From Lepidodermella squamata (lineage: Eukaryota > Animalia > Gastrotricha): a stretch of DNA of 64,000 bases. Below, in pieces: positions 1,237 to 23,431 of this stretch; the stretch's first letter is position 1, and each line of letters begins with the position of its first letter. Below the pieces are notes generated by a model. The model did no database searches. It saw nothing but the letters and a program-made list of their open reading frames with translations, and had not been told where the DNA came from. The stretch covers positions 930,001 through 994,000 of the forward strand of contig JBLDXI010000003.1 of NCBI GenBank assembly GCA_047495785.1, in the 5' to 3' direction. Made by a program: the position numbers and the translations under genes.

Positions 1237-1548
1237 TTATTTTTCACTGCCTTCCATAATTTGCCTCGCGATGATCTTTGCCCAAATGTAGAAGCTAGAC
1301 TGGTTGTTGCAGATGGTTTTCGAGCTGAAAACAGCCAAGCATTTCGCCAGTCGCCGCTCGCGCTCTCTGTCGACCATAAGCTGTACTAGAGCAGTTAGGC
1401 GCTTGCTGTCTTGCTTCGCCAACTCATTGAGCTTGTCGCCAATCAGTTGCCTCAACGTCATTCTCGATTCTTCACTGGCCACGGTTAAGATTCCAATCAG
1501 GGCAAAAGTGATAGAAAATAGCTTGAAAAAATAGAAAGTGTTCAGCAT
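1237..1548 (-). CDS. Secreted C-x9-C small protein family, type A copy 1 (103 aa, intronless)
   Basis: Hydrophobic signal peptide; RRLAKCLAVFSSKTICNNQSSFYIWAK motif; TATAAAA about 45 bp upstream; many paralogues in the window. Confidence 0.9.
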   Translation of the reverse strand: MLNTFYFFKLFSITFALIGILTVASEESRMTLRQLIGDKLNELAKQDSKRLTALVQLMVDRERERRLAKCLAVFSSKTICNNQSSFYIWAKIIARQIMEGSEK

Positions 1549-1882
1549 GTTGCTTTCAAGTAGAATGGTGCTGATGGCTACTTGAACTGTTTTTATAACA
1601 CGATTGAAATTTCAGTAAAATTCCAGCCATGATGAGGTACAGGCTCAATTATGTGCGTAGTCACGTCATCCTGTAACAGACGATTAACTATGAACAGGAT
1701 ATCACTATAAACAGGAGTCATTTAACAGGCGTGCGATCACTGACACTACCGATCTGTGGACAACAGGCAATTTGAGTCCCCAATTTTAGATTTTCATCAT
1801 GTCAATTTTCCGATGTTCATCAATCATCAATCATCTAATTATGCAGCAGAAAGTAAATAATCGAATAATATGTCTGTGTTAA

Positions 1883-2660
1883 CCCTTTCATGGCGGAATT
1901 ATTTATCTGCGGTAGAAAAAATATTTGACAGCAGTTTTGGGGGTTTTCAAAGGCCCTGATCACGATTTTGAAATCCGTTTGTCTTTATCTATCACCGTTA
2001 AGGCTGTACAAAAAGTGGCCGAAATCGTCCTATCCGCCCAGCTGATTTCAGTCGATTTTTCGAGCACCCTAATTTCTGTTTCAGGTGTGTTCAGTTTTGG
2101 AATTTTATATTCCAAAATTGCTCCCACGAATGTCCCTAAGATTTTCCCTCATTTATATCACCGAAAACATTCAGAGTGCAAAAGTTTCAGAGGCTCAGCA
2201 TTCAGATCTGAATTCAGCTTTTCCAGTTATTGCTGGCGACAGTTTTTGCAGCACAAAAATCACGCACTCCGCCTGTATGAATCTGGGCGGATAGGACGAA
2301 TTCGGCCGGTTTAATTGAATATCAATGGCGTCGTCATTTTTAATTTCCAACTCGAAAAAATTTGAACAGAGGTCAATGAGACTATGGCGGACACGGAGGT
2401 ATTTTTGTGGGATCAAAAAATGATCGGAAATCTATGCAATTTCAATTTGAAAAAAATCGAAATTTCAATCTCAGGTTGACTATTTTCAAATTGCTGGTAT
2501 GTCCTGACCATGCAAGATAACGGCGTCCTGGTCTCAAAACCTTGTAGACAACATCAAAAAGCAATATTCCTCAAAAGGGCGATCAAGAATTCATCAAATT
2601 CAATTTTCTGCGAATTTTCAAAGTCGAAATTCCGAAATCGTCCTTCCCGCCGTGAAAGGG
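1883..2660. mobile_element. Non-autonomous piggyBac-like element (778 bp)
   Basis: TTAA at 1879-82 and 2661-64; TIRs CCCTTTCATGGCGGAA / TTCCCGCCGTGAAAGGG; absent from paralogous units at ~6245 and ~10035. Confidence 0.9.
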
Positions 2661-3405
2661 TTAAGAACGTTCGCCCCCAGATTTTCCGTCACAGAAAACC
2701 CTTTTAACCTGTTTAGACCGAGACTCGGCATTTTGAAACTACACGTAATTACAGAATGATAATTGTTCGGACTTGCAAGTCCAAAATGTGCCCGTTCCGC
2801 CAGGAGCGATAATCGAGTTCCAAACTATCGTCAGACCAAGGGATAACTCACTTGAAGCACTCTCGAAAAGCCCCAATGCTATGCATGTTTAAGACGCTAG
2901 TTTATTACTGTTAGGATTCCTTATGACTAGGTTTGGGCTCGCTGGAAGCTTTTAGGCACGCGAATCACCTCTAAAATAACTCACATTTTCAAGTATGCCT
3001 CTAAATAATAGAAAATAGAGTATAATAAAAAATATGTTGGAATCACTGCTTTCTGTATCAGGTTTTTTATGAAAGACCCTTCAAGAGGTGGCCGTTCAGT
3101 GATCAGGAGCTAAGTTGAGCTAGCTATGAACTAATTTCTGGCGATGAATCTGGTTTTTTTCGCTTTTCTGCATCTATTTTACCCTGGAGTTCACCTGGGT
3201 TCATTCCAAGCGATTAGGTCACTGTTCAAGTTGCACTGCTGCATTACTCCAAAATGTGTGGTGCAAGATGACTATCACGATCTTTTTCTTCCGGCGTGTC
3301 TTATTTGTCCTTAAAGCTTGCTTTTGATGGCAGTTTCCGGCTTTTGTCAAACTGCTAGACATCAGCCACGGAGGAGGGATCGATGGACTTTTTCGTGCTC
3401 TCGAA

Positions 3406-3527
3406 GTCATTGAGCATATCAATGTCCTGAAGGAAAGAAAAAATAAGCGCAGAGTGTATCGCCACTCTGCGGTCCGTAGAAATCTGTAATAAAAAAGAAG
3501 CTGTCTACATTTTGGCTAAAGTGCTGG
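3406..3527 (+). pseudogene. Remnant of type-B C-x9-C gene
   Basis: Nucleotide similarity to 8261-8390 (tgtatcgccactct..ggtccgt..gaaatctgta..ggctaaagtgctgg) with indels; 5' exon missing. Confidence 0.8.
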
Positions 3528-4056
3528 ATTTGAATTAGACATTTTGGACATTTTCGTCGAATTTGATTGGCAAACTAGGAGGAGATTGGTAACAGTTTTT
3601 AATTGGCGACGGAAAACAGATGAGTTCAATTGTCACGCTTCGCCGATCAAAGAAGGGGAAAAGGAATTGGAGGAGTGTGTCTAAATGAATTAAAAATTAA
3701 ATTGATAGAATCCTGTACATTAGTAATCAGGCTTCTAGTTCGAACTGCGATTGAACACCTTGAGTGAAAGCGAACTAGACCTCAGAGACAATGATTAAGC
3801 TTCTATTTTTCCTGCCTAGTTAATTGCTAATACGTCATCGCTGTGATTTTCTGTGTCGCATATAGCCGCTAAAAGCTATCACGACATCCTTTTAATTAAT
3901 CATTCATCCTGGTTTTAGTAATTGGTCCGATACGCAATGCAACGATCACGCACAATATTAGGGTAGCAAATTAGATTACAGTTAATAAAATGTCGACCCT
4001 CCGTTAAAAGCCTCGGCACAGCGTCAACTTTTAACGTCATTCAACTTCAAATCAAG

Positions 4057-4365
4057 ATGCGAAATATTTACCATTTCCTCAAGCTATTATCCTTCACATT
4101 TTCTTTGATTGGAATCTTAACCGCAGCTAGTGAAGATTCGAGAAAGATAAAATGGAAGATGCTGGGCGAGAAGATAAATTTGTTGGCTGAGAAAGACGGC
4201 TGGCGTTTAACCAATCTACTTCATCGAATGGTCAACCGGGAATGGAGGCGGCGGCTGGAAAAATGCTTGGCTGTTTTCAGCTCGAAAGCCATCTGCAACA
4301 ATCAGTCTAGCTTCTACATTTGGGCGAAGATTATGGCAAGCAAAATTATGGATGGCAGCGAGTAA
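4057..4365 (+). CDS. Secreted C-x9-C family, type A copy 2 (102 aa)
   Basis: Signal peptide; WRRRLEKCLAVFSSKAICNNQSSFYIWAK; AATAAA downstream. Confidence 0.9.
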   Translation: MRNIYHFLKLLSFTFSLIGILTAASEDSRKIKWKMLGEKINLLAEKDGWRLTNLLHRMVNREWRRRLEKCLAVFSSKAICNNQSSFYIWAKIMASKIMDGSE

Positions 4366-5201
4366 TAATTGGATCCCCAAAGATTATACATTTCGATCAC
4401 CATTTGTTCGTTAAAATAAAGTGGGTCCATCTATAATTTGATCTGAGTCATTTTCCCATGCGTCAAATGTATTTCCATCAACTCAAAATCATGAACAACT
4501 ACTTCCTAATGATGACATAGTAATCATATTCTCTTATTTTCTATGGATCTGTGGCCTATTTTGTAGAAGGTGGAGGGTAAAATTAACTGATACAAAGCTG
4601 CCCTTCATGGATCCCATACTAATTCTAAAGGTCAAAGGTCACAGATTAAATCCTGCACGTTATCTCTTTGTCGTTGTTTCCTATTTCCTATAGTAAGTCG
4701 GTAGCAGCTTTAATTCGCCGAAAATGCCGATATTCAACGTTACAGTTGCGACTTGCGACTCCAGTTTATTTGTATAGTTCACAGTATTGGATTTCCGGAC
4801 GACATAAGCTAATTGCGACGTCATCGGGTACAAGGCATAATTTATTCCAGCATCCAGTAAAGAGTTGTGCACGGGCCGGGCCGGGTGTGGGCCTGATTTT
4901 CAATACCCGTCCTCATGTATTTCTTCAAACTGTTTTCAGTATCTATGGCAAAGTAAAACTTTAAGTTATTGCCTTAGCGAAATCGTAATCTTGAATCATA
5001 AATTAGCTGATTTTTCTTAAAAATGAAGTATCTTCCAGGTTTTTGATCAACGCGAAGGAGAAAGCATCGATTTCTTTTACGGGCCGGGCCGGGTTTGGAT
5101 ATATTTACTGACGGTCTTGAGTTCATCCGGGATATTTATCGAATAAAAAGTTTATATTTCTCCTGGTTGATTCATCCGTGCCAACAAAATATTTGGAACT
5201 T

Positions 5202-5232
5202 CAATCTGCAATCTGCAATCTGCAATCTGCAA
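5202..5232. repeat. (AATCTGC)n tandem repeat, ~4 copies
   Basis: Directly visible. Confidence 0.8.
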
Positions 5233-5625
5233 TTACATATTTAATATGCATTTCGTGAACGAAACGTCAATCAATTTTAATTAGAGTTGCCTCGTTTTAA
5301 TAAGCGCTTTGTCCCTTGATGTATTAGATTATCCAGCATCAGAAAGAGATGCTAGATAATCTAGCCAGAGGGTTGCCGATCACTCCATCCATGAGAAGAA
5401 GATACGTCTTATGGCTCCATCGTGTAACAAAAGTGATAAGAGGTAGATTAGAAGTGTTAAGAGCGGTCATGCGGGATCCACGGCCTCAGCCATCCATTAA
5501 ATAAAAATCGGGACGCCTCAAACATTAAAAAGAGTTTTCGAATTTTACTATTTTATAGCTTATAACACTATCGATTAGTGACAGGCTTGACAACGAATTG
5601 CAACAATTCAGAAAGGTTTGTATCA

Positions 5626-5937
5626 TTATTGTTCACTGCCTTCCATGATTTGCCTCGCGATAATCTTTGCCCATATGTAGAAGCTAGACTGGTAGTTGCA
5701 GATGGCCTTCGAGCTGAAAACAGCCAAGCATTTCGCCAGTCGGCGCGCTCGTTCTTTGCCAGCTATAAGCTGAACAAGAGCAGTTAAACGCTTGCTGCCT
5801 TGCTTAGCCAACTCATTTAGCTTGTAGCCAATAATTTGACTCTTCGTCTTTCTTGATTCTCTACTGGCGACGGCTAAGATTCCAATCAGGGCAAAAATGA
5901 GAAAAAATAGCTTGAATAAATAGGAAGCGTTTAACAT
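5626..5937 (-). CDS. Secreted C-x9-C family, type A copy 3 (103 aa)
   Basis: Same motifs; upstream region homologous to those of copies 1 and 4. Confidence 0.9.
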   Translation of the reverse strand: MLNASYLFKLFFLIFALIGILAVASRESRKTKSQIIGYKLNELAKQGSKRLTALVQLIAGKERARRLAKCLAVFSSKAICNYQSSFYIWAKIIARQIMEGSEQ

Positions 5938-6429
5938 GTTGCTTCAGAGTGAAATGACGCTGATTGAGATCTGTTTAGAATTTAGAAGTCCCGATTGCAA
6001 TTTCAGCAAAATTCCAGCCTTGATTACATGCTTAATCATGTGCCGTCCCGTCATCGCGTAACAGACCATGAACTAAAAAACAGTATATAATTGCTCTAAA
6101 CAATGACACGATCGTGGACAACGGGAAACGTGAGTATCCAATTTTAGGCTTCCATGTTTCCAATGTTAATGTCACATGTTAGGTGTTCATCCTTCATCAA
6201 TCGTCTATTTAGGCGGCAGAAGGTGAAATCTAATAATTTATCTGTGATATGAACGTTAAACGCCCCCAGACGTCTCTTAATTTTTAGACCAAGTCTCAGC
6301 ATTTTGAAGCTTCGGTTATAATGTACGGGAGTAGAATTATAAGATGAATGATTATGATGTTATATGAACATTAATCGGAAAAACATGTGAGCCCGGATAT
6401 TTAGAAGAAAGCGTGTTAAACGTGATCTG

Positions 6430-6733
6430 TAGTAGAGGCTGTATTTTCCGAACCCTTGCAATGAGAACAGCACGCTTGTCCGGGAAATTTTTAGAGCGAT
6501 GGACAGAGTTTACGTTAATATGCGGGCATCGCGCTTGATAAGGCGGACATTCCTTTAATGCGGACGCGTACTAATAAGCCCACTCAAATCTAACTATAGA
6601 GCGCGCTGGTCGTAAATAATGGGCCATGTCCTGTCTGCTAAAGGGCCGCTCCAGGGGGCGCCTCGAAATATGGGAGATCGCCCAATGCGGACAACATTTA
6701 TCCGCGACGAATGGTATCCGGATTGTATTACAG
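6430..6733. mobile_element. Degraded pogo/Tc1-like MITE, paralogue of 10200-10490
   Basis: Colinear similarity to 10200-10490; termini decayed. Confidence 0.55.
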
Positions 6734-8045
6734 GACTTATGTTTAATATAAGCACTCTTGGAGAAACAATCTGCCTCTACGAATACTCCGGTGATGTGCG
6801 CAACTTGTGCTAGTAGAAACGTACAGAGGGTACCTATCTGATTGACCAAGGTGTCCGCCGTTGCGGAGAAACGATTAGTGTTCGTCTGTCTGGTCGGGTT
6901 CAGTCAAGTGGTCTTCAAGGCTTTTTTCGAATTCGTCGTTATTAACTATGTTGCTTTTAAGAAGTTCTCTCAGATCTTCCGATAAAAATGCAATCATAGA
7001 ACTAGAAAAGCAGGAAACTTACAACTTTTCGCGAGCGTGTTAAATTGAATTTTGGCACGTCGGGAAATTCCGTTTCCCTGCCCACTGTAACTATTGTCTT
7101 TACGCTTGCTATAGCACGTATAGATATGTTAAATAAGCTTCCTTTGACTTGTTCTGCAAAATGAAACATGTTACCGGAAGGAAGACCGAGACGGCTCGAA
7201 GCAGCTATAAGTATGCGAATCGCATCGAAGAAGGAAGACAACGAATTTACAGAAATCAATCTACGTTTTTTCTATGGGCGCAAATGGTCGATTGGAGAAC
7301 CAAGGAAGGCAATCGCTGAATCAATTATTTGTCATATCAAAACGATGACTGGTCTAAACTTTTGTTTCCTCTTACTGTGTTCACTTTTCCTGTCCTAAAT
7401 CTGAACCTGTCCTGAAATTATCTATTGCTTTTTCCTTCAAACATTGTCAAGCTGCCCTCTCTTGGGTGCCATAGCTTCTAAATAAATAAATAAATAAATA
7501 AGTTTCAACTGTTCCCTGAAAATATTGGAAGATGAAGTAAAATAAAAATGCGCCGCTTCATATTTCATAGCAAGCTTGTATGAAATAAAGACACACTGAA
7601 AAAGTGAAGGCCGGTCAGTGATCAGCAGCTAAGTTTAGCTTACTGAACTAATCTCTGGCGCTGAAACGGACCTTTTCGCTTTTCCGCATCTATTTTGAAT
7701 CCTGGAGCGTGTTCATTATGAACGACTAGGCATGAGGTCAAATTACCCATTTCAGTTATTTGGTGCGTCATGTCTAGAGGCGCGCAGTATGACTAGGCTT
7801 ATCCTTCAAGCAGGATGAGACTTCCAGAAATTGACTGGTGCATTACTCCAAACGTGTGACTATCACGACCTTTTTCTTCCGGCGTGTCTTATTTGTCCTC
7901 CAAGCTTGCGTTGACAGCAGTTTCCGGCTGTTGTCAAACAGCTAGACATCAGCCGCGAGGGATGAATCTACCGGCTTCTTGTTGCGTATAGTTTTTAATT
8001 GATCTCTTACCTCTTATCAAGTTCAAATTCTTCGAAAGGACAATC

Positions 8046-8435
8046 ATGATTGTATTATTAGGCCTCTTCATGTTAATTGCCAGCAGTTCAGCTAGCAAGG
8101 ATTTGCGAAAGACAGCTAAGCATCAAGATTCGAAAGAACGGATCAAACTGCATTCAAATGCCATCCGTAAGTCACCGCAAAATGTTCAGCGGAAACTCTA
8201 CTTTTTAATGTCTTTTCTAGCTACAAATTTCCGAGCAATCCTTTTGGCCAACATAAGTTCAGTCATTGAACTGATCAGTCATCTGAAGCAAAGGGAAAAG
8301 AAGCGCAGAATGGCCAAATGTATCGCCACTCTACGGTCCGTGGAAATCTGTACTAACAGAGGAGCTTTCTACATTTGGGCTAAAGTGCTGGCCAACAAAA
8401 TTGTGGATGTGAGCACAACATACAAAAATGTATGA
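8046..8435 (+). CDS. Secreted C-x9-C family, type B (2 exons, ~111 aa)
   Basis: Signal peptide; likely phase-1 intron 8167-8220 (GTAAG...TTTTCTAG, 54 bp, in frame); KKRRMAKCIATLRSVEICTNRGAFYIWAK. Confidence 0.85.
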   Translation: MIVLLGLFMLIASSSASKDLRKTAKHQDSKERIKLHSNAIRKSPQNVQRKLYFLMSFLATNFRAILLANISSVIELISHLKQREKKRRMAKCIATLRSVEICTNRGAFYIWAKVLANKIVDVSTTYKNV

Positions 8436-9412
8436 ACAAATTTGTATCATTTTGTTTCGAAAGCGAGACATTGTCGACGTTACTATCAAATTGTATTGGT
8501 GAATATAAATAGATGTACCAGATGCGGTACTAGATGCTGTCCGCTGTCATGCCGCCAATACGCGTCGCCAAATAATGTCTCCACTTCTGCGAGGCGTTCA
8601 AATGCAATTAGGTAGTTATGAAAGATGAAAGATATCGGCAAACGGATGCAAGGAATGCGGACAACTTAGCAGTGGAAAAGGTTTTTCACTTTAACAGAGA
8701 ACCAGCGCTATTGTTTATCGCCGCACTCGGGCCGCCGGGCTCGGGTCTCTGGAATCGGGCTGTCGGCTGTCGGGCTTGGGTCGCTGGACTTGGGTCATCC
8801 TACAACCAATTTATTATATTAACCGTTAACCGACATCAGAAAGTCATGCTGGTAGAGAGTAGAGATAGAGATATAGTGATTTCGCCTAGATATGACGCCC
8901 CGGTGACGTCGATGATCGGTTGCGGATTGAGCTAATCATCATGGCGGATTTTCGGCCATCTAAATGAAAACAAATCCAGGGATATGAGGTAGAGAATGAT
9001 TGCTGATTCGTTCACTGGCGAAGTTTTGCTCAAGGGCGTGAAAAACTCCCATGTTTAAACAGTACTATCATAGAGCGAAGTAGGACCGCGAAACTGGTTG
9101 GGATTACAAAAATCGGCATAAGGGTCTCCCTTTGGTCTTTGACTGAGCTCAACTTAGGGACCGTTGGAGCTGGTAGGGATGATCCCTACCATCCCTAGCG
9201 CTACTTCGCTCTCTCGTACTATCGAAATCCATTATTTCAATGTCGAGCGCTTCGTTTAACCTTCACTGGCGCCAGCGTCAGGCGTACAATGCCTACTGGT
9301 AACCGCAACCGTAATTCAAGTAATTCTAATACTATCGATTAATGGCACTGCCAAGATCGACGAAAGATATGATGAAGGATGTCAATACTCTTCTTCAATT
9401 TTATTATTATTA

Positions 9413-9721
9413 TTATTCACTGCCTTCCATGATTTGCCTCGCGATAATCTTTGCCCAAATGTAGAAGCTAGACTGGTTGTTGCAAATGGTTTTCGAGCTG
9501 AAAACAGCCAAGCATTTCGCCAGTCGCCGCTCTTTCTCTCTGCCGGCCGTAAGATGAACCAGAGCGGTTAAACGTTTGCTGCCTTGCTTAGCCAACTCGT
9601 TTATTTTGTCGCCGATCAGCTGCCTCTTCGTATTTCTCGATTCTTCACTGCCCACGACTAAGATTCCAATGAGGGCAAAAGTGAGAGAAAATAGCTTGAA
9701 TAAATAGGAAGCGTTGAGCAT
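9413..9721 (-). CDS. Secreted C-x9-C family, type A copy 4 (102 aa)
   Basis: Same motifs; TATAAAA upstream (ttttataa at 9761). Confidence 0.9.
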   Translation of the reverse strand: MLNASYLFKLFSLTFALIGILVVGSEESRNTKRQLIGDKINELAKQGSKRLTALVHLTAGREKERRLAKCLAVFSSKTICNNQSSFYIWAKIIARQIMEGSE

Positions 9722-10199
9722 GTTGCTTCAGAGTGAAATGACGCTGATAATGAGATCTGCTTTTATAACTCTATTGAAATTTTAGAAAAATTCCAGCCAT
9801 GATGATTACATGCTTAATCATGTCTCGCTATCGCGTAACGGCCCATCAACTAAATAAACAGGAACCATTTAACAGTAGAGCACATTCATTGACACTATAT
9901 TCCTTTGAGAACGGAAAATTTTAGTCGCAAAACTTAGGGTTTTTTTATTGATGTTTATGTCAATTGTTGGGTGTCTATCAAACAGTAGTCATTTAACTAT
10001 AAGTAGGGAAGGGATATCTAATAATTTGTCTGTGATACGTATGAACGTTGAACGCCCCCAGGTGTTCCCTAATTATCCGTAAAATGTACGTTTGAACTTT
10101 TAGGCCAAGTCTCGGCATTTTAAGCGATGGATTTGCGAGTTGATTGATAATATCATGAACATCTATAATTGGAGATTCCGAGGGAATCGTGTTAAACTG

Positions 10200-10490
10200 C
10201 AGTAGAAGCTGTATAATCTAAACCCCGCGAAGCGGACAGCGGGCTTGTCCGGAAAACTTCAATGCGACGGACAGATTTAACATGTGCGTATATTGCGCTT
10301 AATAAGTCCCTTAATGCGGACGCTAACTAGTACGGCTCCTCAAGTCTAACTAATCAAAACAAACAATATATGCGCGTGAAAATTGGCTTGATCCTGCCCG
10401 CTAAAGGGCCGTTTCTCGGGATATAAGCGATCGCCCATTCCGGACATCGTCCCCGTGATCGATGGTGTCCGGATTGTACAGCATCAACTG
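10200..10490. mobile_element. pogo/Tc1-like MITE
   Basis: Imperfect TIRs CAGTAGAAGCTGTATAATC / GATTGTACAGCATCAACTG; second copy at 6430. Confidence 0.6.
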
Positions 10491-11112
10491 GACAGTTAGG
10501 TATGCAATCTTGGGTGGCACATAATACAGGAACACAGACAGAAGGTATCTGATTGACCAAGGGGTACAATCAGACGTCCGCCGTTAGAGGGACACGATTA
10601 GGATTTCGGGACGTACATCTACGTCTGGACTGATTTTAGACGTTCAAGTAGGTTTGCAGTTCAACGTTCGAGGATTATAAGTGATTTTCTTCTCTCTGCT
10701 CAACTATATGCGTTCGATGATGTTCCTCTTATTAATTGCATAGAGGTTAGAGGTTGTCAAACGATGAGGCATCAGGTCACAGGTTCAATTACACATTATA
10801 CTTTGTGCACGGTATGACCAGGCTTATTGTTCAAGCAGGATAGGGCTTCCAGACTAGCACATTTCTCCAAATGTATGATGCAAGATACATCTCACGACCT
10901 TTATCCTATCGGTGTGTTCTATTTCTATTTCTCCTCTATGCTTGCTTTCATGGCAGTTTCCGGCTTTTGTCGAATTGCTAGACAGCAAACAGCAGCCACG
11001 GATAAAGGAATCGATGGACTTCCTTTGCTGTGTGGTCTCTAATTGATAATTATAACCTCGAACAACATTTTTGATCAGATTCCTTCAGTTCAAAACCTTC
11101 AAAGAGACAATC

Positions 11113-11356
11113 ATGATTCTATTATTAGGCCTTTTACTGTTAATTGCTACCAGTTCAGCTAGCAAGGATTCGCGAAAGACTACGAAGGTTCAAGATTTGA
11201 AAAAACGGAGTAAACTCCAACTTCTAATGCCATCGCACATAGGTCACTGCAAAATCTTTTTCCAAATAGCCTCAAGTGACTCGTCGGTCCGTGGAAATCT
11301 CTACTAACAAAGCAGTTTTCTACATTTCAGCCTAAGGGCTGGGTAACAAAATTGTG
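11113..11356 (+). pseudogene. Type-B C-x9-C pseudogene with internal deletion
   Basis: Signal exon near-identical to 8046; most of exon 2 deleted; 3' end frameshifted. Confidence 0.8.
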
Positions 11357-12405
11357 AATGACAATTCGATTTATTACAAAAATTATAAATAAATCCATAG
11401 CCTTTTACCTTTTACATCATTGTACAAAATGTGATACTACCCTTCTGCCAGGCGCTCAAATAAATCAAATGAAGATAATTTTCCCTTCATGGGCCAACGG
11501 TTGCAAGGAATGTGTAATTAGCAACGGAAAAGAAAGATTGAATCGATTTCTAAACTAAAGCATTCAGCATTCAGTTGACATCACTGATCTTAATAATCGA
11601 CAAAAAATTAGAGCATCTTAGCTAAATATACTCATGTTGTAATATTATGTCAACTGTCAGCTCGTGATAAAACCGTCACGCCAAACCCTGAAATGAAGGG
11701 CGAGCTTGGACAGTTTGCTTGATACCGAATATTCGTAACTCTGAGAATAATTACTAAGAGTATAGGTAATTGTTTTTCTCTCCCTGTTTTGAGAGGAGGA
11801 CAGAGGAGGGCTACGAACTAGGAACGAGACATGTCGGATTTTTTAGTGAAAGCTTGTTCAATGACTATAAAACGAATCCAGTCGCCCGATCCAAATTCGA
11901 CTACAAAGCTTCTTCGTGTTTCTACAGAAGAAGCGTAATCTGACATGTTAAGGGTAGAAAGAGGACATGGAACACAGACGTTACCCTTCGCACCCTTCGC
12001 AGATCTTAGAAGGGAAATTAAAGGGAGTGTGTCTAAGTCAATTAAATTCCTGTACATCGGACTTTAACTAGTTCGAACTACGTTTTAATACATTGGGTGA
12101 ACTACGAAAACTACGAACTAGATATCTGAGACTCCTATTCATTGATTCTCCTGTTTAGTGAATTGCTAACGCCTCATCCGTGTGAGTTATTGTCGAGCAA
12201 AATATAGCCGAAAATGCTAATGAGCTATCACAACTCACGACATCCTTTAAATTACTGGATCCTGGTTACTGTCGGTGGTCCGATCCGAGACGCCGTTATC
12301 ACGCACAAAATTAGGGTAGTGAATTGGATTAGTCGATAAATTGTCAACCTAGCTATAAAACCCTTTGTGCTGTGTTCACTTAACGTCATTCTACTAAAAC
12401 TCAAG

Positions 12406-12714
12406 ATGCTGAATACTTCCCATTTTCTCAAGTTATTTTCCTTCACTTTTGCTTTGGCTGGAATGTTAGCTGACGCCAGTGAAGATTCAAGAAAAATTAA
12501 GTGGAAGCTGTTGGGCGACAAGATAAATTTGCTGGCTGAGAAAGACGGCAGGCGTTTAACAAATCTAGTTCAAAACATGGTTAACCGTGAATGGAGGCGG
12601 CGGCTGGCGAAATGCATGGCCGTTTTCAACTCGAAAGCCATCTGCAACAACCAGTCAAGCTTCTATATTTGGGCGAAGATCATGGCGAGGAGAATCATGG
12701 AAGGCAGCGAGTAA
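12406..12714 (+). CDS. Secreted C-x9-C family, type A copy 5 (102 aa)
   Basis: ATG at 12406 aligns with paralogue starts; TATAAAA at ~12354. Confidence 0.9.
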   Translation: MLNTSHFLKLFSFTFALAGMLADASEDSRKIKWKLLGDKINLLAEKDGRRLTNLVQNMVNREWRRRLAKCMAVFNSKAICNNQSSFYIWAKIMARRIMEGSE

Positions 12715-13727
12715 TAAGAGATGAACTATTACGGGTATCTCAAACATTACCTACAAATTTCGATCACCATTTCTTCTCTAAAGTCAATTGAATATGGCTT
12801 ATAAAAAATTTCCGCTTCAAGTTTTGAGACCTATGAATACTCTTTTCAGTGCGTTTTCATCGATTCTGCTAAGGACAAATAAAACAGATTTTCGTTCGTT
12901 TTCGTTCGTATTGTAATTCAATGAGCCAAAGCTTATTTCCTGCAAAAGCATATCCTTGAGTCTTTCGAAAAATAAAACGAAGGTTGAACATTCGAAGTTG
13001 TGAACGAAAGTAGCCAGCGCTTTCATTGATCCAATAGAATTCCATGGGTCACATTCCATATCGTAAGTTAGTAGCTTTACTACGAAGTAGGAAGAAAATG
13101 CGCAACTGCAAGGCTTCAGTTTCAGCCCGATCTATATAGTTTGCGCGTAGATGCCGTTCTTTTATATGATTTTGTTGTTGTTGGTATGTTAGAATCAAGT
13201 TGGCGTTTATACATACCAAAACGCGCGAATCTCTCTCGAATTCCTTATTTCTCCAAAAAAGGAAATAGAATTCTCGTGCTATTTTATTTGAATTGTTTGT
13301 ATGCAAAAAATCGATCAGTTCAAAACTTGGCGCCCGCGGGAAAAATCTACCTCCATTTTGTAGCATAAAATTGAGTTCAAATTTGTGCCCGTTTTGCAGA
13401 ATGAAATGAGACATGTATCTGATAAAATATGTTCAATTTTCTCCAGGTGACAAAAATACCTGAAACTGCAGTCTGAAAATAGAATAATACACGCCGAGAA
13501 CGAAACGTCAATTACCTAAGTTTTATTAGATTTACCTCATTTGGAAAAGTGCGTTGTCCCGTGATTAATGATTCATCAGGCTAACCTCTTTCTCATACTG
13601 CGGTAGAGGTAAAGCGATAGGATAGACATTTTCGTGGAAATATACCTAATTGTAAGTCCGTTGCGGTTTGTATTACTCATTAGGGATTTTCGACCAGTTC
13701 CACCTAAATCCTAAATGAGAAGGGGGT

Positions 13728-14400
13728 TTGGCCGTCAGCATTCAAAAAAGTCCATATCTGCCCAATATACACAAGAAAAAATCAAAATCAGATAAGGCCA
13801 ATTATCGCCCGGTTGGGATGGGGGAGATAATCGGCAAGGTCTTCGAACGAATTGTAGCAGCCGCTCTGCTGAAAAAAGGGAAAAGCGAACAGAGTCATCC
13901 CTCCCGACCAAGCAGCTTTCATGGCCGGTTGCAGCACTACTGTCGATCACTGCTGCGAATTGCGTATCGCTAGTGCAGCACTAGAGATCCATCCTGGTCT
14001 CCGAGGGCGGCCGGGACAAAATTAAAAAAATTAGCTGCACTGCTGCGAATTAGCTGCACTGCAGTGATCGACATGTTATCGACATTTAACAACCAATGAA
14101 TCTTCATGCCTACGCCCACGCGGCACCCTCAATCCTAGATCGGCTGGACCCAGTCCAAGATCGCTGTTGTAAAATTACCGGGGTCCAACTCCCAGCCCTC
14201 AAATTCGATCGAGGTATGAGATCTACGAACCGCCGCTGACAACATCAAGAAGATCGGCAACTCGTCACCAGTTTCAACTTCGAATCCACTCGAGATTCGG
14301 CGGCGAACACTCAAAAGCCCCAATCGAGCCATACGCTCGCCTTCTACAGCTCATTGAAGACTGGAATAAACTCCCTCGTAACGCATTCCGGCAGCGTATA
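13728..14400. mobile_element. Rearranged LINE (non-LTR) remnant containing a small foldback element
   Basis: IHKKKSKSDKANYRPV...KVFERIV on + is a typical LINE RT N-terminal motif; RLGLLSVRRR on - is a LINE ORF2 C-terminal motif; inverted repeat TGTCGATCACTGC at 13941 and 14061. Confidence 0.7.
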
Positions 14401-15026
14401 AACATTAATCTATTCAAGCGTGAAATTAACACTCTACGCCTGCCACAAGATCGCTTAAATCAAGGCTGAACATTGTTTTGTAAAAACTGCAGCCAGAAGC
14501 TGAATCGCTGATCCTATTGATGTGCAACTTGAGACGGTTGAAGAAGTTACATTCATCATGAGCTTGAAAACTCCCACGTCGAAGCACGTCGAAATCCGGG
14601 CCTGTCTGCAAGGAAGAGAGCTATAAAATATCCATAATATTCTGGATAGTCCATATAGAAGTTCTCAGCTAACGAACGCCATCGCGGATTGTAATAACCA
14701 TAATAATTGGAAAGCTCGCTGTCTGCTTCTTTCTCAGCTTCCTGTGTCGTCATTTCCCAAAGAAATCAGATAAAGGGGTGCAATTACCATTTTATTGTAA
14801 TAAAAATGAATAGATTCGGAGGCGATGTTAGGAGCGACTAATATGCTTGCTCAATGGCAAAGAATTGCTGTGCAAAATCACAATTATCAGACATTTTTGC
14901 CGCACCTAAATACCGAATCATAACGCAAAATCCTCAATTTTTTCAAACGCTGAAAAGCCCTGCCTTTCAGCGCCTGCCTCTTTTCAAACTCTCCTCCTAT
15001 TTTTTGTATTCACGGTTGATGTTCCA

Positions 15027-15335
15027 TTATTCGCCGCCTTCCATGATTTGCCTCGCCATCATCTTCGCCCAAATATAGAAGCTAGACTGGTTGTTGCAGA
15101 TGGCTTTCGAGTTGAAGACAGCCATGCATTTCGCCAGTCGCCGCCTCTTTTCGCTTTCGACCATAAGGTGAATTAGAGTAGTTAAACGCTGGCCGTCCTT
15201 TTTAGAAAACGCAATCAACTTTTCGCTCAGCAGTATCTTCTTCATCTTTTTGGGCTCTTCACTGCCAACTGCTAAGATTCCTATCACAGCAAAAGAGAAG
15301 GAGAACAGCTTAAGCAAATAGAAAGTGTTTAACAT
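15027..15335 (-). CDS. Secreted C-x9-C family, type A copy 6 (102 aa)
   Basis: Same motifs (KRRRLAKCMAVFNSKAIC). Confidence 0.9.
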   Translation of the reverse strand: MLNTFYLLKLFSFSFAVIGILAVGSEEPKKMKKILLSEKLIAFSKKDGQRLTTLIHLMVESEKRRRLAKCMAVFNSKAICNNQSSFYIWAKMMARQIMEGGE

Positions 15336-16721
15336 CTCGCGTTTGAGATAAGCGATCCAGAATGAAAGCTGTGTTTTTGAGTTTTACTGGAACACGATTG
15401 TAAAATCCCTCACTTAACCAACCAATTATCACTTGCCGACTCATGCGCGTGGTCACGGACTTGCAACTATACACCATAGCGGCAAAACAATAGTACGTGA
15501 CCGTTTGAGGATAAGTGACAAGGTTCTGAGTACCCGGTTCGAGATTTTTTAACGCTTTGAAATTTGAAATTTGATGTCAATTGTCTGGTTTCCGTCAACG
15601 TCTAATTATGAGCCAGACAACGAAATGTCCACACACCATGTAAATCACCATCAAATTCCGCGAGTTGAATGAAGGGCGTATCCAACCACTTTGTAAGCCA
15701 TCATTTGAATCATTTTTATTTGATTTATGTAACGAGTAATCAAAACTTGTGTTTTCCATTTTTGTGACATTTTGCAACTCAAGCACAATATTGCATGGAA
15801 AATTCGTCTCGCTGTTAGTAAATTCTATAACCACCTCGCGGCTTTCTATTCACAAACAACCATAAATTGTTGCGGGAAGTGGAACTTAGTCGTGAAATCT
15901 AGGTTTTGCCCCATGTTCTGAATGAAAGTTTCCAGTGATTTGATTGGCTCGATGATAATTTAATAGGGCATAGCGTAAACCCTTCACCGTCATCGTTTTG
16001 TATTGATTCGCGAGTACGAATTTTCTGGCGGCCGAGTTTGATCCAAGGGCTTTCCGATCCTACTTTCTACTTCGCAGTCGGTGTCTCGAGAAGGCAAAAA
16101 TAGATCGCTCCAATTTTTATTCAAATTCCATCGTCAAAATCGATGATATTCCTGGAAAATAAAGATGGCCATCTAAATTATCAGCGCTCGTACAATTTTG
16201 GAATGCGAGCACCCGTTAAGATTCCGCTAAATCCCATAAAACTTTGAGCCGACATTTTGCGTTCAGAAATGACCAAGGCGCAGTTGACTAGGGCTGAAAT
16301 AGGTTAAACTTAAATGAGTCATTACTATTCGGTTAGTATCACTTTAGGAAAGCTTGGTACTCTGCCCATGATTCAGACATGTTGTTTGCGCAGTTAACAG
16401 GAACGCGCCCATGGAGCGTAGGCAATAACTGCCTGGTAATGCATGGGATTGATCATTTATCCAATCACTGATGAATTTCCGGGGAAAGTTGGTCATTACT
16501 AATGACTTGAACATCCTTCTTTAGTGTCACTGCTAAATCCATGTCCACAGGCCGATGTCTAAACCGGCTGCTAATTACGCCGTCCCCTCGTTATAGTTGA
16601 AAATCCCTACAGAATCCCGTGTATCAGCTTTAAATAGTCATGGCTATTTATAAGATAGAATTCAATCGTTTTATTTAAACGATAGAAAAAGTTTAACGAC
16701 ATTCGAGGACTCAAAAACAAC

Positions 16722-17030
16722 ATGCCGAACGCTTCCTATTTTCTGACTTTATTTTCTGCAACATTTGCTCTGATCGGAATCTTATCAGTTGCAAGCGAAG
16801 AATCAACACGGATGCAATGGAAGCTGTTGGGCGAAAAGTTGAATGAGCTGGCTAAGCAGGACAGCAGGCGTGTAACCGCTCTAGTAAAAAATATGGTCGA
16901 CAGCGAAAGGAGGCGGCGGCTAGCGAAATGCATGGCTGTCTTCAGCTCCACTGCCATCTGCAACTACCAGTCAAGCTTCTATATTTGGGCAAAGATGATG
17001 GCTAGACAAATCATGGAAGGCAGCGAGTAA
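16722..17030 (+). CDS. Secreted C-x9-C family, type A copy 7 (102 aa)
   Basis: Same motifs (RRRRLAKCMAVFSSTAIC). Confidence 0.9.
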   Translation: MPNASYFLTLFSATFALIGILSVASEESTRMQWKLLGEKLNELAKQDSRRVTALVKNMVDSERRRRLAKCMAVFSSTAICNYQSSFYIWAKMMARQIMEGSE

Positions 17031-17269
17031 TAGATCAACTAGGAGGCTCAAACATTCCTCCATTTTGTTTTCCATCATTTTCACGTTTGGCATAAATAAA
17101 CAATGAATGAATGAAATGCCTCGCTGATGTTTTTGAAGTGCTGAAATCGACATCGCTCTAGCTCTGAATTTTGCCCAAAGTGTTCAAGCCTGGCTCGCGA
17201 AAACTGCCAATCGAATACTCCCAAATGTTTACTTCCACGTTTATCAACGAAGTTTCGCGAAGTTCGCTC

Positions 17270-17357
17270 TATTAGAGAGCTGATGAATCATCTGAAAGGG
17301 AGAGAAACGATACGAAGAATCGCCATTCGCATTGTCAGGTCCAGGTCCGTAAAAATC
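17270..17357 (+). pseudogene. Short type-B remnant
   Basis: gagctgatgaatcatctgaaagggagagaa..ggtccgtaaaaatc resembles 8268-8349; Cys codons lost. Confidence 0.5.
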
Positions 17358-17818
17358 ATCCATCCGTGATATGAAAAGAACTATCAATATACTCGACAAG
17401 TTGAAATTTGCGTGGAAATGAGAAGTCTTTTATTCGCATACCTCGTAGAGGAGTCTGAGTCAATTATCTCTATCCAGAACACCAGAAATCTCGCGGCAGA
17501 TTAGTTGGGACTACGTTTGAAAGCTTTGGGTTAAGACGAACTAGTGATTTGTGACGGATCTATCATTACTACTACTTCATTGCTAATACATCAATTTGGT
17601 GCTATCGTTTCACTCGAAACCCAAATCTGATAATACTATCACATACTCTTTTTAATTGGTAATTAGTCACTCCCGGTAATTGTTGAGGAGTCCGATACAT
17701 GATGTCGTTGATCGCGCACGAAATAGGGCAGGGCATTTGGATTTTTTAATTAATTGTCATTCGCGTGTTAAAACCTCGGCAAAAGTGATACATAGCTTCA
17801 TTCTGCTCAAAACACAAT

Positions 17819-18130
17819 ATGCGAAATACTTTCTATTTCATCAGATTAATTTCCTTCACTTGGGCTTTGGTTGGATTCTTAGCGGTCGCCGGTGAGGAAT
17901 CGCGAAAGATGAAGTGGAAGCTGTTGAGCAACAAACTAAATGAGCTAGCCAAGAAAGACAGCCCACGTATAACTGCTCTGGTTCACCATTTTGTCGACCA
18001 GGAAAAGAGGCGAAGGCTGGCGAAATGCATGGCCGTTTTCAACTCGAAAGCCATCTGCAACAACCAGTCAAGCTTCTATATTTGGGCGAAGATGATGGCT
18101 AGGCAAATCATGGAAGGCAGCGAGCAATAG
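17819..18130 (+). CDS. Secreted C-x9-C family, type A copy 8 (103 aa)
   Basis: Same motifs; AATAAA downstream. Confidence 0.9.
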   Translation: MRNTFYFIRLISFTWALVGFLAVAGEESRKMKWKLLSNKLNELAKKDSPRITALVHHFVDQEKRRRLAKCMAVFNSKAICNNQSSFYIWAKMMARQIMEGSEQ

Positions 18131-19035
18131 ATCACCTGGGAATCATAAACGTTAAGATTATAAGTCTCGTTTTCAGCACCATTGATCTTCGAAATAAACG
18201 TCCGATCTTTGAAATTGACGAATTCTTGTTCGCGGAGATTTTAGAAGATCTATATGCAGTAATCCGACTAGGTCCAGCTCTGAGGGGGGTAAATCGAGCC
18301 ATTTGCAGGCCAGAATTTGCAAGTCAACAGGAGGGACCCTTGCGTTTTTCAGAAATTTTCGAGCGCCAGGGGGGTTTGTTTAGTCGGAGCACTGTCAATA
18401 TGGGCAGTTGAAGAAATGTCGGGTCACCTCCATATTCAACTTGAAATTCATTCAAAATCGTCACCAAACTAAATACTATCAAAATGTCATTATACGCCTC
18501 AGTTTTCAGCTGACTTCTGATCGTTTTATTATTGTAAATGTTCCACGGTTTCCAAACCTTCACAATAATTCATAGCTCATATCATCATCTCTTTGGCATG
18601 GTTTCATCTCGTAATAGTGGGTTACTCCGACGGAAATACAGCAATTCAAAGTGTCAGTTACTTCACGATTGCTGGTCCAATTTTTGGTACACATTCTACG
18701 CTAATGGATTTCCGGACAATCAATGGTTTTATAGTAGAAGATTACATGTAGGTGTCAATATAATACTAACGGCGCGAAGAACCGGATTTTCAAAATATTT
18801 AATTTGCTCATGGTTTTTCCCGCGCATCCACTCTACAGACATCCGACGGTCATGAGTCAAACATTTTGAATGCATAGCTAAGAGGCTGAGTGGTTGAATA
18901 GCCCTTCCTGTTCCTTCGCTTTAGTTTCTGGTTTCAATAACGCAAGCGGAAATGAGGGGATTCGAGGGTTTTTACGATATAAAAACCAGATACAAACTTT
19001 GATTTCAAAGAGCAAACATTTGCAGGTTTTGAAGA

Positions 19036-19405
19036 ATGCCTTTTAATCTTGAACGTCTCACAATCCTAATATTAATGGTATCCTCAACGATATCACTGCA
19101 AATTGAACGTACTGATAAATCAAATTCGAAGACGCTCTGTAAGTTGACAATTTTTAGCTTATATATCGGTATTTCATGCATATTTGTTTTCAGCTAAATT
19201 ACTGTTGTCTAGCATTGTTTCACGGCGTGACAATCCCGCAAAGATGGATGAATTGGCGCAGTTTCTATCGAAAGCAATTAGACAGCGGCGATTGACTGAA
19301 TGCATCCGACTCCTTGGTTCACGTGCAGTTTGTGAGAATCAGGTCGGCTTCTACCTATGGGCGCAATATCTCGCCCGCAAGATAATGACTGGAAGCAGGC
19401 ATTGA
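19036..19405 (+). CDS. Divergent C-x9-C family member (2 exons)
   Basis: Exon 1 19036-19138 (MPFNLERLTILILMVSSTIS...); phase-1 intron 19139-19193; exon 2 includes RQRRLTECIRLLGSRAVCENQVGFYLWAQYLARKIM. Confidence 0.85.
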
Positions 19406-20995
19406 ACTGAAATTACTAGCCTTTTAATAGAAGAAATAAAAAAACATTAGGGTTTTGACAAATCAGACTGCCAGATTCGAGTCGATTTTTTGGCCTGATT
19501 GTTGAAAAAGTCGCTGCCATGAAAACCATTCACGCAGAAAATCCCTTAATTAATGAAATCAAATAATTAGAATTAATCAATCAATCAATTATTGCTAAAT
19601 AAAAGAAAAACAATTTATTTTCTCCAAGCGTTACCATCTGTAACTTTGTTTCAATAACAAGCGATGGACATTCTATTTAACGTGCCAATTTTCCCAACTC
19701 GAGTCATATGCGTAGGCATGGCATTTGAAATCGGACACAACTAATTGCTTGACAGGCTAGTGCTAGACAGAGTTGATAGATAAAGTGGTGATGTTACTAG
19801 ACACGAAATTGCGATATTTTATGCGTTAGTAATTCACACAGATCACCCGCTGGCGTTGAATTTAACCTATTCTCTGTTAAATTCCCGCTTTCGATAGTAC
19901 TGCTGATCACCATCATGCGTGAAATCTCTGACAAAGCAAAATTATGACTAGAAATCGGCATTAAATATAATTGATCTCTCCATGAAAAAAGATGTAAACC
20001 TGAATTCAGATTTCGATAAATTATACCAATTTTTGGTGGCTGGATGAAATAAGACATTGGCCTAGTTTAATCAAAATTTCCTCCCAGGAATCCATCCATG
20101 CGAACAGCATAAACGGAATTAATGCTAATTTCAAAACGCGCCGAGAACAAAGTGTCAATTAATTCGAATAAAATATAATTGATCCCTGTCGTTTGGAACA
20201 AGATCCGTGTCCCGTGATTCATTAGTTGCCAACAGGGAGCATGAACGTTTTCGCCGAATTTAAGCGTCACCATTGTAAATTCTTGACATAAGATTTCGTT
20301 ATATTCGTATCACCCAGTTCTAGTTGATCGACGTTAATGCGGGCAGCCGCGCAGACAATGACAGCACGGACAGCCGATGTACTCTATTCTTGATTCGTTT
20401 AAACACGCGCAGAATACGAGCATCTAACAATGACACAAAAGGGATCAAGTATAGTAACCAAACACCAAACCGCCGTGAGTTTAGAATTTCGGCATTTCGG
20501 CTTCTTAAAGTCTACGAAATATCTTCGAAAGATGATATTGAAACTAGCTTCAATTTACCTAAGATTGCGTACTTTGACCTATGATCGATTGAACTTATAC
20601 TGGCATTAGAATAACGTCATACAATTAGAGTCAGCCGCGGTCTGTTTCGCACGGACGATCTATTGACATCATAGCACCTAAAGATGATTGCCCAGTTAAA
20701 CTCAAACTCAAAGTCAAACGAGTCAATTACGCAGATTCTGACACTCGCACCTGGCTAGTGACGGCAAACAATAACTGGAAGATCTATTTTTGGAATTTCC
20801 GTGCTATCTGACGCATCAATGGTCCCTTTTGATAGCAGAAATAAAAGTCAAAGTGACAACTCGGATGTTCTCTAATTGTCTTTAACTTCATCGAACGCAT
20901 CAGCAAATTATGCGGCAGATGACAGAAAATTTCACGGGAGATCTTGAGCCTCAATCCCGAATCTTTTGAATGTTTCTATTCTACTCAGAAACAAA

Positions 20996-21304
20996 ATGCG
21001 AATTACCAAAAATATGTTTGCGGGTTGTTTGCTAATCTTTTTTACGATTGCCTTGCATGCAGTCGTGGGCAAGGAGGCTAAAACGTGGCGATGGAATTTA
21101 GTGGCCGGAGAACTGAACGAAGCAGCTCGACGAACTGGCGACAAGCGCGTCATCTCGCTGATGAAGCATGTGGTCAACTCTGAGACAAAGCGGCGACTGA
21201 CGAAATGTCTCAAAGTTTTCAGATCTGCTGCCATCTGCAACAATCGAGCTACATTTTTCCTTTGGGCCAGATGGTTGGCGGAATCCATCAAGGAAGGAAT
21301 TTGA
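20996..21304 (+). CDS. Divergent intronless C-x9-C family member (102 aa)
   Basis: Signal peptide; KRRLTKCLKVFRSAAICNNRATFFLWARWLA. Confidence 0.88.
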   Translation: MRITKNMFAGCLLIFFTIALHAVVGKEAKTWRWNLVAGELNEAARRTGDKRVISLMKHVVNSETKRRLTKCLKVFRSAAICNNRATFFLWARWLAESIKEGI

Positions 21305-22034
21305 CTCATGCATCTGATCAATCAGGAAACCTATAAATACACAAGCTTAATGATTTTCCTTGCATGCTTCAAGAAAGATGAACTTTTTCAACTGAACGTG
21401 GCCAATCTTCAACCATGAAGGCTTTATTCGATTCTTCAATATCAGCTTGAACGACATTTGTAATAAGCACGGTTATAGATTAACCTATGTTGCTGATAAT
21501 GAAAGCTGATAATATGACAATGGCCGGAAATGAAGTGTCACAAAGTTGATACTAAGGCTGTTGTGACTTCGGCAGACTATTTCCAAAATTTCACCATACA
21601 ATATCCAGCAAAGGTCGCTCTAAGCGATTCTCCGCACTTGAATTAGCTTCACTCATCTACGACTCGTTCCGATTTTCACACCACGTGCTGCAAATCTCAC
21701 AGTCGTAGAATATTTATGATAGTACAATGTCTGGCAAATATTATTTAAGACTTTTGCATAAAGGTACCAAAAGACAAAAGATCGACTATGGTTCGAGAAA
21801 CAGAATGAGCTTACAACGCGGTCTTAATTCTACAACAGTTTCGAGTTTCCAAGTTCTTATTGTACCTGATTGCTTTCCCTTTTGGAACAAATCCATCGTT
21901 TATTTTCGAAAGGGTATGATCTGTCTAGTCTGTATTAGAATAGCAGCTTTTGGACTAGGATCGGGGCTCAGGTTTAGCACTTGAAAAATATAAACAAAAA
22001 CGAAGTTTTTCATACAATCAAATTGATTGAAAAT

Positions 22035-23248
22035 CTACTTCTTGTCATTGGCTGGTTTCGATTTCAGCGGAACTTCGCAAATGAACGACTTTTCCTTGTA
22101 ACACTGCTGGTCATTCCACTTCCAATTGAAGTCGCCCCGCATTTCTAGACAGAACTCGTTCCCCTAAGATCAGAAAGACTTACAAAAGCGAATGGTAGAA
22201 TTTTCAAGTAACCAAAGAGCTATCTGGCTGATTTTCCTTCCAGAATGAGAATCCGGCGTCGGACATGGTTTTTGCCACCTGGCCTGCTCGCTGAGGGATC
22301 CAAGACCACAACTTATTGACTTCAGGGTTCGAGAAAGTGGTCCAGTAAGAACCAGTCGAGTTTCTCAAGATATTGGTTGCACCGATCCAATAGGTTCCAT
22401 TGGAGAAGACTAATAGGAATAGGTGAAAGCTTTAAGAATATTGATATAACTTCGCTATTTCTTGATTTTATGAGCAACAAGCCTTATGTCTAAATCCTTA
22501 ATAACCTGAGCTTCAAGTTTTTTACCTTCAGTGCTGTTGAGGTAGCGAGCAATGGATTCTTGTTCGAGCCGGCTCTGGATGTTAACGAGCTTGCTTCCTC
22601 TCTTGGCACAATCAATCATAGCAGAGAGCCAATTCAGCGACTTGTCCTTAACGAATTCATAGCACTTCCCAATAGAGGGGCTACCTACAAATCCAGCCGG
22701 ACATTTCGCCAAAGTCTTCACTAAAAAATAAGCCGATTTTCAAAGAGTGAAAACAAAGTGTAAGTCTTACAGTATTCTGGAGCATCATCCTCGCAGAATC
22801 GTTCATCAGAAGCGTCGGAGCAGTCTTTTGAGCCATCGCATAGCTTCGCCTTGTCAATGCAAGTCTTATCAGAATCCCAGCACAAATGATTCTTCTCCTG
22901 CTCGCACTTCTGCTTTGGCGATAGCGTGGTGGTCGGAGGCACCCAAGGAGTATAACGGCCGGCCATGTATTGACCACGGCCGTAATAGACCTGCTGAGTG
23001 GTTGCCGGAGCTGGAGTTGTAGTTTTCGCCAGATCCTCCAGCGTATCATTGAAACGTGTCTCAAAGCGCTCGAGTTTACGCTCGAATCGGTTCAACTGGT
23101 TCATAATACGAGCGACAAGATTGTCACTCTCCTGGTGGTACTTGCCATAGCTCCGCTCTTCCTCCTCAAAGTCATCATCCTCATTTTCAAAGGCTTTCAG
23201 GCCAGAAACGAGGCATAGCAGCCCTATTATTACCAAAACTTTCATCAT
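22035..23248 (-). CDS. Secreted protein: coiled coil + LDL-receptor class A repeat + C-type lectin domain (4 coding exons)
   Basis: Signal MMKVLVIIGLLCLVSG; LDLa CIDKAKLCDGSKDCSDASDE; CTLD KCYEF..WLSAMIDC..YWIG..QPD..WND..C..FICE; GT-AG introns keep frame. Confidence 0.9.
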
Positions 23249-23431
23249 GTATGTGTGTATGTATATCCTGAAAAGAGAATTGGGTGTTATGGTTGATAAA
23301 CATGTATTAATTAAACTTACACTCAATTAGCAATTCCGCGCACTCCAAACGACCAAATGAACCCGTCACGCGAGGTTATCGTAGTGCGTTCTATAGCTGA
23401 TTGCTGAATTCATCCTTTGTAATTTTTTGTT

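Follow-up and report, generated by a model that had tools for sequence, protein, structure and literature searches.

In a 64,000-nucleotide (nt) stretch of the genome of the gastrotrich Lepidodermella squamata (contig JBLDXI010000003.1, positions 930,001 to 994,000; hereafter the window), we find an array of genes for an unnamed family of small, basic and probably secreted proteins. Searches with tblastn and a six-frame profile scan place all family members between 1237 and 21304 of the window, where 11 genes appear intact, eight of them of type A and the others of types B, C and D. Our preferred reading, which we hold tentatively and with somewhat less than even confidence, is that these genes encode helical proteins of two modules that stay intact, rather than precursors from which a peptide is cleaved, the reading that we rank second.

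Under the preferred reading, removal of the signal peptide would leave an all-helical mature protein of approximately 75-80 residues, with both modules set along a single long helix. Of these, the N-terminal one would be an amphipathic helical hairpin with a variable sequence and a conserved hydrophobic repeat, and the highly conserved C-terminal module would consist of an R-hydrophobic-x-x-C-x9-C motif, a loop rich in Asn and Ser, and a helix of the form F-Y-x-W-A...A..I. Its two invariant cysteines would most likely form one disulfide, which would fasten the loop, like a staple, to the long helix where it ends. The protein would be exported and act outside the cell, intact and folded, possibly as an oligomer formed via an exposed hydrophobic stripe of the N-terminal module, with the C-terminal module as the part recognised by a receptor or other binding partner.

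Judged by sequence, the resemblance among the window copies is far beyond chance, because their profile expectation (E) values range from 1e-20 to 1e-31 and their open reading frames (ORFs) are still open at synonymous divergences of 0.3-1.1. These divergences (dS) are those between pairs of type A genes, for which non-synonymous divergence (dN) reaches 0.27; types B and D are 32-38% identical to type A (38% in the case of D). The dN/dS ratio of type A is 0.27 overall and below 1 everywhere, so that all regions are under purifying selection, yet its strength differs along the gene, at 0.13 in the tail (codons 64-102; bootstrap range 0.06-0.29) versus 0.37 in the middle region (codons 26-63; 0.22-0.61). 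An earlier note on this DNA, made from the sequence alone, had described a nearly invariant tail and a drifting middle region, and this comparison bears it out. At a finer scale, dN/dS is 0.28 in the signal peptide, 0.36 and 0.42 in the two halves of the middle region, 0.25 in the Cys loop and 0.07 in the last helix. Within the Cys loop itself (codons 67-80, e.g. window 18017-18058), the eight type A genes have a synonymous divergence of 0.28, against approximately 0.6-0.85 elsewhere in the gene, a drop suggestive of gene conversion within this segment or of RNA-level constraint.

It might be supposed that these ORFs are fortuitous frames within repeated DNA, or that a mobile element carries them, given that blocks are repeated within the array and that antisense ORFs of 65-129 amino acids overlap several copies. 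We consider this very improbable. Nucleotide similarity between most copies (73-87% identity) ends at the ORF borders, although within subgroups it reaches 100-650 nt further upstream, and the dN/dS of 0.27 is found together with saturated dS. Moreover, relatives at 25-56% identity keep the two cysteines, the tryptophan and the signal peptide and lie amid ordinary animal genes, while neither terminal repeats nor a transposase were found next to the copies. The antisense ORFs at 1304-1534 (+), 12252-12521 (-), 16736-16963 (-) and 20932-21321 (-) were considered as coding sequences in their own right and judged to be by-products of sense-frame codon make-up, given that selection, signal peptides and homology all lie in the sense frame.

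The family extends beyond the window. A full HMMER profile scan of 1.84 billion representative proteins with the window alignment (cut-off E 1e-3), which set no bounds on protein length, returned 65 relatives (P0001-P0065), 14 of them at 1e-10 or better and the best at 2e-15. They are 44-251 residues long, carry the module at the C-terminus in every case, and come from at least three other sequencing sources, so that the description of the family as lineage-specific in the earlier note was too narrow. We regard them as true homologues, sharing with the window family a signal peptide, an amphipathic middle region, the C-terminal module and the lack of introns, but differing from it in that identity is only 25-56% and most are without the paired arginines discussed below. 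The closest correspondence involves type C, which is 56% identical to P0006 over 52 amino acids and is the window member nearest to the outside relatives. Most relatives trace to biosample SAMN13674978 (in several assemblies) and others to runs SRR29217541 and SRR23086389. On the contigs of the relatives, animal DNA with a GC content of 32-39% is densely packed with genes, among them those for Cys-loop receptors, Fringe, V-ATPase, kinases and tRNA synthetases. One compact animal genome holds the family at at least seven loci, as singles, one or more pairs and a triple, always as single ORFs. In the metagenome-derived genome of the relatives, small same-strand clusters stand amid unrelated genes (L005 1589-1891, 8731-9051 and 10009-10335; L001 10013-10312 and 10977-11288), and no array as large as that of the window was seen among the outside relatives' loci.

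None of the family members checked, in the window or in other assemblies, has a name or a curated protein source. All 30 clusters of relatives that we looked up belong to ENA or Logan assemblies of compact genomes from other animals and are without names; a word-indexed protein search found no match with the window alignment and only seven unnamed ENA proteins with a 60-sequence alignment; exact look-ups of three window proteins returned no record; a scan of JGI metagenomes with the window alignment found no relative; and literature searches on the family motif and on the relatives' accessions yielded nothing relevant. Among 60 members no consistent Pfam family was detected, a single beta-defensin match (E 0.08, in one of the 60) being judged noise. 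Searches of the PDB by sequence or profile found no relative, the best profile match (E 0.018) being to designed helical bundles, and Foldseek comparisons with the PDB and BFVD gave nothing with E below 1. The family was thus rightly described at the outset as unrecognised.

Conservation is concentrated in the tail, where ten positions are invariant in the 11 window copies (R65, R66, C70, S76, C80, F86, W89, A90, A94 and I97), and the C-x9-C tail motif proposed earlier was recovered. Across 79 sequences the invariant residues are the two cysteines and one tryptophan, and over 90% also have the Phe of F-Y-x-W-A and one Ala of the last helix. Nine residues separate the cysteines in 65 sequences, eight in 13 and ten in one. 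Between 72 and 92% of outside relatives carry a hydrophobic residue at middle-region positions 36, 40, 43/44, 51, 54/55 and 58, and near position 47 a spot prone to turns is conserved. An N-terminal hydrophobic segment of signal-peptide type, with small residues before the charged stretch, was recognised by hydropathy and inspection in 54 of 60 members, in keeping with the signal peptide that the window copies had been credited with. A later segment of transmembrane grade (mean hydropathy of a 19-mer above approximately 1.6) is absent in nearly all of these 60, the highest value being 2.11 in P0048. Secretion is therefore what we would expect of these proteins. N-glycosylation sequons in the loop past the second cysteine are enriched without being conserved (24 of 79 sequences, vs approximately 4% by chance).

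Structure was modelled with AlphaFold, supplied with the family alignment, for the 17819-18130 copy as full and as mature protein. Mean predicted local distance difference test (pLDDT) scores are 85 and 86, and predicted template modelling (pTM) scores 0.57 and 0.64, respectively. Helices are predicted at 27-46, at 48-74, which spans the basic cluster and the first cysteine, in a short segment ending at the second cysteine and, after a loop, at 88-99. The pLDDT is 94-97 from approximately residue 56, some ten residues upstream of the basic cluster, to residue 95, so that the site of the basic pair would lie inside a confidently predicted helix and not in a flexible segment. At the basic cluster, the conserved hydrophobic face of the long helix rotates by approximately 150 degrees; the protein would therefore comprise two modules with a hinge at this point. 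The packing of the helices and the disulfide are both inferred.

The principal alternative is that the protein is a prepropeptide, in which, once the signal peptide is gone, a subtilisin-like convertase cuts after the paired arginines (RR) and frees a hormone, neuropeptide or pheromone of 36-37 residues, made up of the disulfide loop and the amphipathic helix, with the middle region serving as pro-region. We consider this a real possibility, if a lesser one than an intact protein, and several observations weigh on its side and against the reading that we favour. Both arginines are invariant in the 11 window paralogues, some of which are only 32-38% identical. The step in constraint falls exactly at the pair (dN/dS 0.42 just before it, 0.25 and then 0.07 after it), and such a step is what would be expected if a C-terminal peptide were cut from the precursor. 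The would-be P1, four residues ahead of the first cysteine, is basic (Arg or Lys) in 72 of the 78 family members (92%), and a dibasic pair of some kind lies close by in 42 of the 78. Placed at the hinge, where two hydrophobic faces meet, the basic cluster would be buried on neither side, and a helix predicted at the site would be compatible with cleavage. Intronless, tandemly amplified genes for peptide hormones exist elsewhere, the bombyxin genes of insects being an example.

Set against this, the dibasic pair at the site itself is present in 34 of 78 family members, comprising all 11 window copies but only 23 of the 67 outside relatives (34%), and the furin-type motif R-x-K/R-R occurs in eight of 78; what the family as a whole retains is a single Arg. 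The residue right after the basic site is hydrophobic in 97% of relatives; furin-type enzymes do not as a rule favour such a residue after the cut site, with some exceptions. We found no mark of processing, amidation included: as had been noted earlier for an amidation glycine, there is no conserved signal, with eight of 79 sequences ending in G, GK or GKR. Nor does the middle region behave as the drifting pro-region that it had been taken for, being under purifying selection, keeping its amphipathic repeat in distant relatives, and being cationic rather than an anionic spacer. The dibasic pair taken for a convertase site in the earlier note is thus invariant in the window, where all copies have RR, but present in only about a third of the outside relatives; likewise, the precursor model finds agreement in the invariance of RR and the fall of dN/dS there, and disagreement in the outside relatives, the predicted helix through the site and the selected, cationic middle region. 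We place the intact protein first because two-thirds of the outside relatives are without the pair, the site falls in a predicted helix, the middle region is selected, amphipathic and cationic, and no amidation mark is present. On the sequences at hand, cleavage at RR is possible in the lineage of the window, without being a feature of the family.

A role in host defence would be possible under either processing model. Microbial membranes would then be bound and disturbed by the entire protein, basic and amphipathic as it is, or by a single helix of it, and microbial pressure would have driven the diversification of the array. The net charge of the mature protein (approximately +8 to +10), its amphipathic helices and the tandem array of diverged paralogues are consistent with such a role. 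We nevertheless think it improbable, since the tail, which is the most conserved part and nearly invariant, carries only +1 to +4, dN/dS below 1 everywhere gives no sign of diversifying selection, the preceding 40 residues are not an anionic propiece but carry approximately +6, and no defensin-type or other antimicrobial Pfam family is matched.

Membership in any known family cannot be claimed. The features that would mark a prohormone are mixed. Precursors of the calcitonin/CGRP or MCH type resemble the family in having a signal peptide, a variable region, a basic pair and a conserved C-terminal stretch with a Cys-Cys loop, and calcitonin-type peptides also have an amphipathic helix after the loop. 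However, the family differs from both in its ring spacing of 9 (8 in 13 relatives), in the 22-residue helix after the ring and in the missing amidation signal; MCH-type peptides have a shorter ring. Unlike prohormone precursors, moreover, the family does not conserve the basic pair throughout and matches no hormone family in Pfam. Membership in the calcitonin/CGRP/amylin family was rejected on the spacing of 9, 8 or 10 where C-x5-C would apply, on the absence of a Calc_CGRP_IAPP match and on the rarity of the Gly signal, and the earlier statement that the peptide is not calcitonin-like stands. Twin Cx9C (CHCH) proteins of the mitochondrial intermembrane space share a C-x9-C spacing beside helices, but the family has a signal peptide instead of Mia40-type import, and its second cysteine is modelled in a short helix past a break. 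Membership was rejected here too, as only a single motif is present, 36 of 79 proteins have just two cysteines, a signal peptide is present, and no CHCH match was found in Pfam. In arrangement, the window is comparable to the insulin-like bombyxin clusters of insects and to arrays of antimicrobial-peptide genes, which likewise consist of intronless paralogues in both orientations, with duplication of multi-gene units and promoters of their own. The family has neither sequence nor fold kinship with these, and would have one disulfide rather than three. A tandem array of intronless genes for secreted peptides is a known arrangement; this family is a case of it that has no name and whose module has no match.

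The 11 genes sort into subtypes A1, A2, A3, B, C and D (Table 1). A unit of three genes (type A on the minus strand, type B on the plus strand, type A on the plus strand) is present three times as colinear blocks, beginning at about 1.2, 5.6 and 9.4 kb. The sole intact B gene belongs to the second of these, which is missing its second A gene. Downstream of the three units are three more type A genes, followed by C and D. The array would have grown by segmental duplication of this unit together with duplications of single genes, after which the copies would have diverged and been retained by purifying selection. Among the subgroup pairs, the A1 copies at 1237 and 9413 are 85% identical in nucleotide sequence, with similarity reaching approximately 100 nt upstream, and the A2 copies at 4057 and 12406 are 75% identical across 661 nt, of which approximately 320 nt lie upstream. 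Expansion for dosage, as the earlier note had proposed, is unlikely, given that the copies are old, differ at up to a quarter of non-synonymous sites and fall into six subtypes; the pattern of divergence rather suggests an old diversification. Because type C is the window member closest to the outside relatives, type A looks like an expansion private to the lineage of the window.

Each type A copy is, on the evidence of its sequence, an old, intronless and separately promoted gene under purifying selection in every part. In an alignment of the 200 nt that precede each of the eight type A genes, we found a TATA-like box approximately 45-55 nt before the ATG, together with a TCA-type start-site motif. 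Approximately 100 nt upstream of most type A starts lies a conserved block with CACGCACA (for example at window 1640-1670, minus strand), preceded in some copies by TGACG, a core like that of a cAMP response element (CRE). This block may be a common regulatory element of type A promoters.

The remaining copies vary in structure and state. The type B product has a short signal peptide, a longer basic middle region and a C-terminal module as in type A. Type C is likely a two-exon gene. Its 73-amino-acid ORF (19184-19405) has no ATG, and the second exon that we propose scores a profile E of 9e-21. We favour two exons because an ATG ORF with a hydrophobic, signal-peptide-like stretch lies just upstream, because the two are separated by a candidate intron of 55 nt (GTAAGT...TTTTCAG) whose phase is correct, and because a TATA-like box stands approximately 60 nt upstream. 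Three pseudogenes had been counted previously, of which the two B-type copies are clearly broken genes and the third is a doubtful scrap. In the copy at 3090-3527, one large deletion took the start and the 5' half, leaving the upstream region and the coding 3' half recognisable, the latter as a tail fragment in the profile scan (E 5.5e-5). The copy at 10812-11360 is broken by a single internal deletion, by at least one frameshift (its tblastn matches lie in two frames) and by a premature stop, and its 3' end cannot be aligned.

Table 1 Family members and associated features in the window (position 1 is the first nucleotide of the window; aa, amino acids)
Feature	Position	Strand	Product	Basis and remarks
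Type A gene, subgroup A1	1237..1548	-	103 aa	Intronless; ORF; profile E 3e-31
Type A promoter region, example	1549..1700	-		Putative, from upstream alignment; equivalent stretch before other type A genes
Broken B-type copy	3090..3527	+		One part, outer bounds; blastn with intact B gene and flanks
Type A gene, subgroup A2	4057..4365	+	102 aa	ORF, profile
Type A gene, subgroup A1	5626..5937	-	103 aa	ORF, profile
Doubtful tail-like scrap	7245..7289	+	15 aa	Profile E 0.01 only; blastn gave no support
Type B gene	8046..8435	+	129 aa	ORF, profile E 4e-24
Type A gene, subgroup A1	9413..9721	-	102 aa	ORF, profile
Broken B-type copy	10812..11360	+		One part, outer bounds; tblastn, blastn
Type A gene, subgroup A2	12406..12714	+	102 aa	Counted from its ATG; ORF, tblastn, profile
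Type A gene, subgroup A3	15027..15335	-	102 aa	ORF, profile
Type A gene, subgroup A3	16722..17030	+	102 aa	ORF, profile
Type A gene, subgroup A3	17819..18130	+	103 aa	ORF, profile; copy chosen for structure models
Type C gene, probably two exons	19036..19405	+		Exons 19036-19138 (signal peptide) and 19194-19405; candidate intron 19139-19193
Type D gene	20996..21304	+	~102 aa	Counted from first ATG; ORF, profile E 8e-26

No part of animal genomes is missed by annotation as often as the small secreted proteins. Since this family has been conserved in genomes that are deeply diverged, and since its module is unmatched in Pfam, the PDB and BFVD, it is a candidate for a new ligand or defence fold, and its 11 paralogues offer an unusually rich natural series for reading which positions matter. 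Should the C-terminal module be a released peptide, it would represent a new type of peptide hormone; otherwise, the protein would represent a new single-disulfide mini-protein fold. A more speculative proposal, which we think on balance unlikely, is that the family constitutes a new class of extracellular signals in poorly sampled small animals, in which the disulfide-stapled C-terminal module, whether released as a peptide of 36-37 residues or borne by the intact protein, would be the ligand of a dedicated receptor and the paralogues A1-A3, B, C and D would act as distinct pheromone- or hormone-like signals.

Scans of the window against Rfam and for tRNA genes gave no match. Immediately right of the array is an ORF with an LDL-receptor class A domain, followed by an OTU cysteine-protease ORF and by a fragment of a Tnp2-type transposase that scores below the Pfam cut-off (22721-23326, 23432-23956 and 31451-32098, all on the minus strand). 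Two paralogous multi-exon genes on the plus strand (26497-28884 and 36093-38162) have ILEI domains and a weak GNT-I match, and are POMGNT1-like. Their GT-AG introns, read by eye, include two of 46-48 nt in the gene at 36-38 kb, and others of approximately 85 and 200 nt in its paralogue; introns this short point to a compact genome. Two genes on the minus strand (46841-47155 and 48622-49134) encode secreted proteins that are small and rich in Cys. Both have an IGFBP N-terminal domain, to which the second adds a thyroglobulin type-1 repeat, and they look like another local duplication. Between 42224 and 45550, on the minus strand, several ORFs rich in Cys, Ser and Thr and without a Pfam match could belong, as exons, to a gene for a secreted protein of mucin-like or adhesive character.

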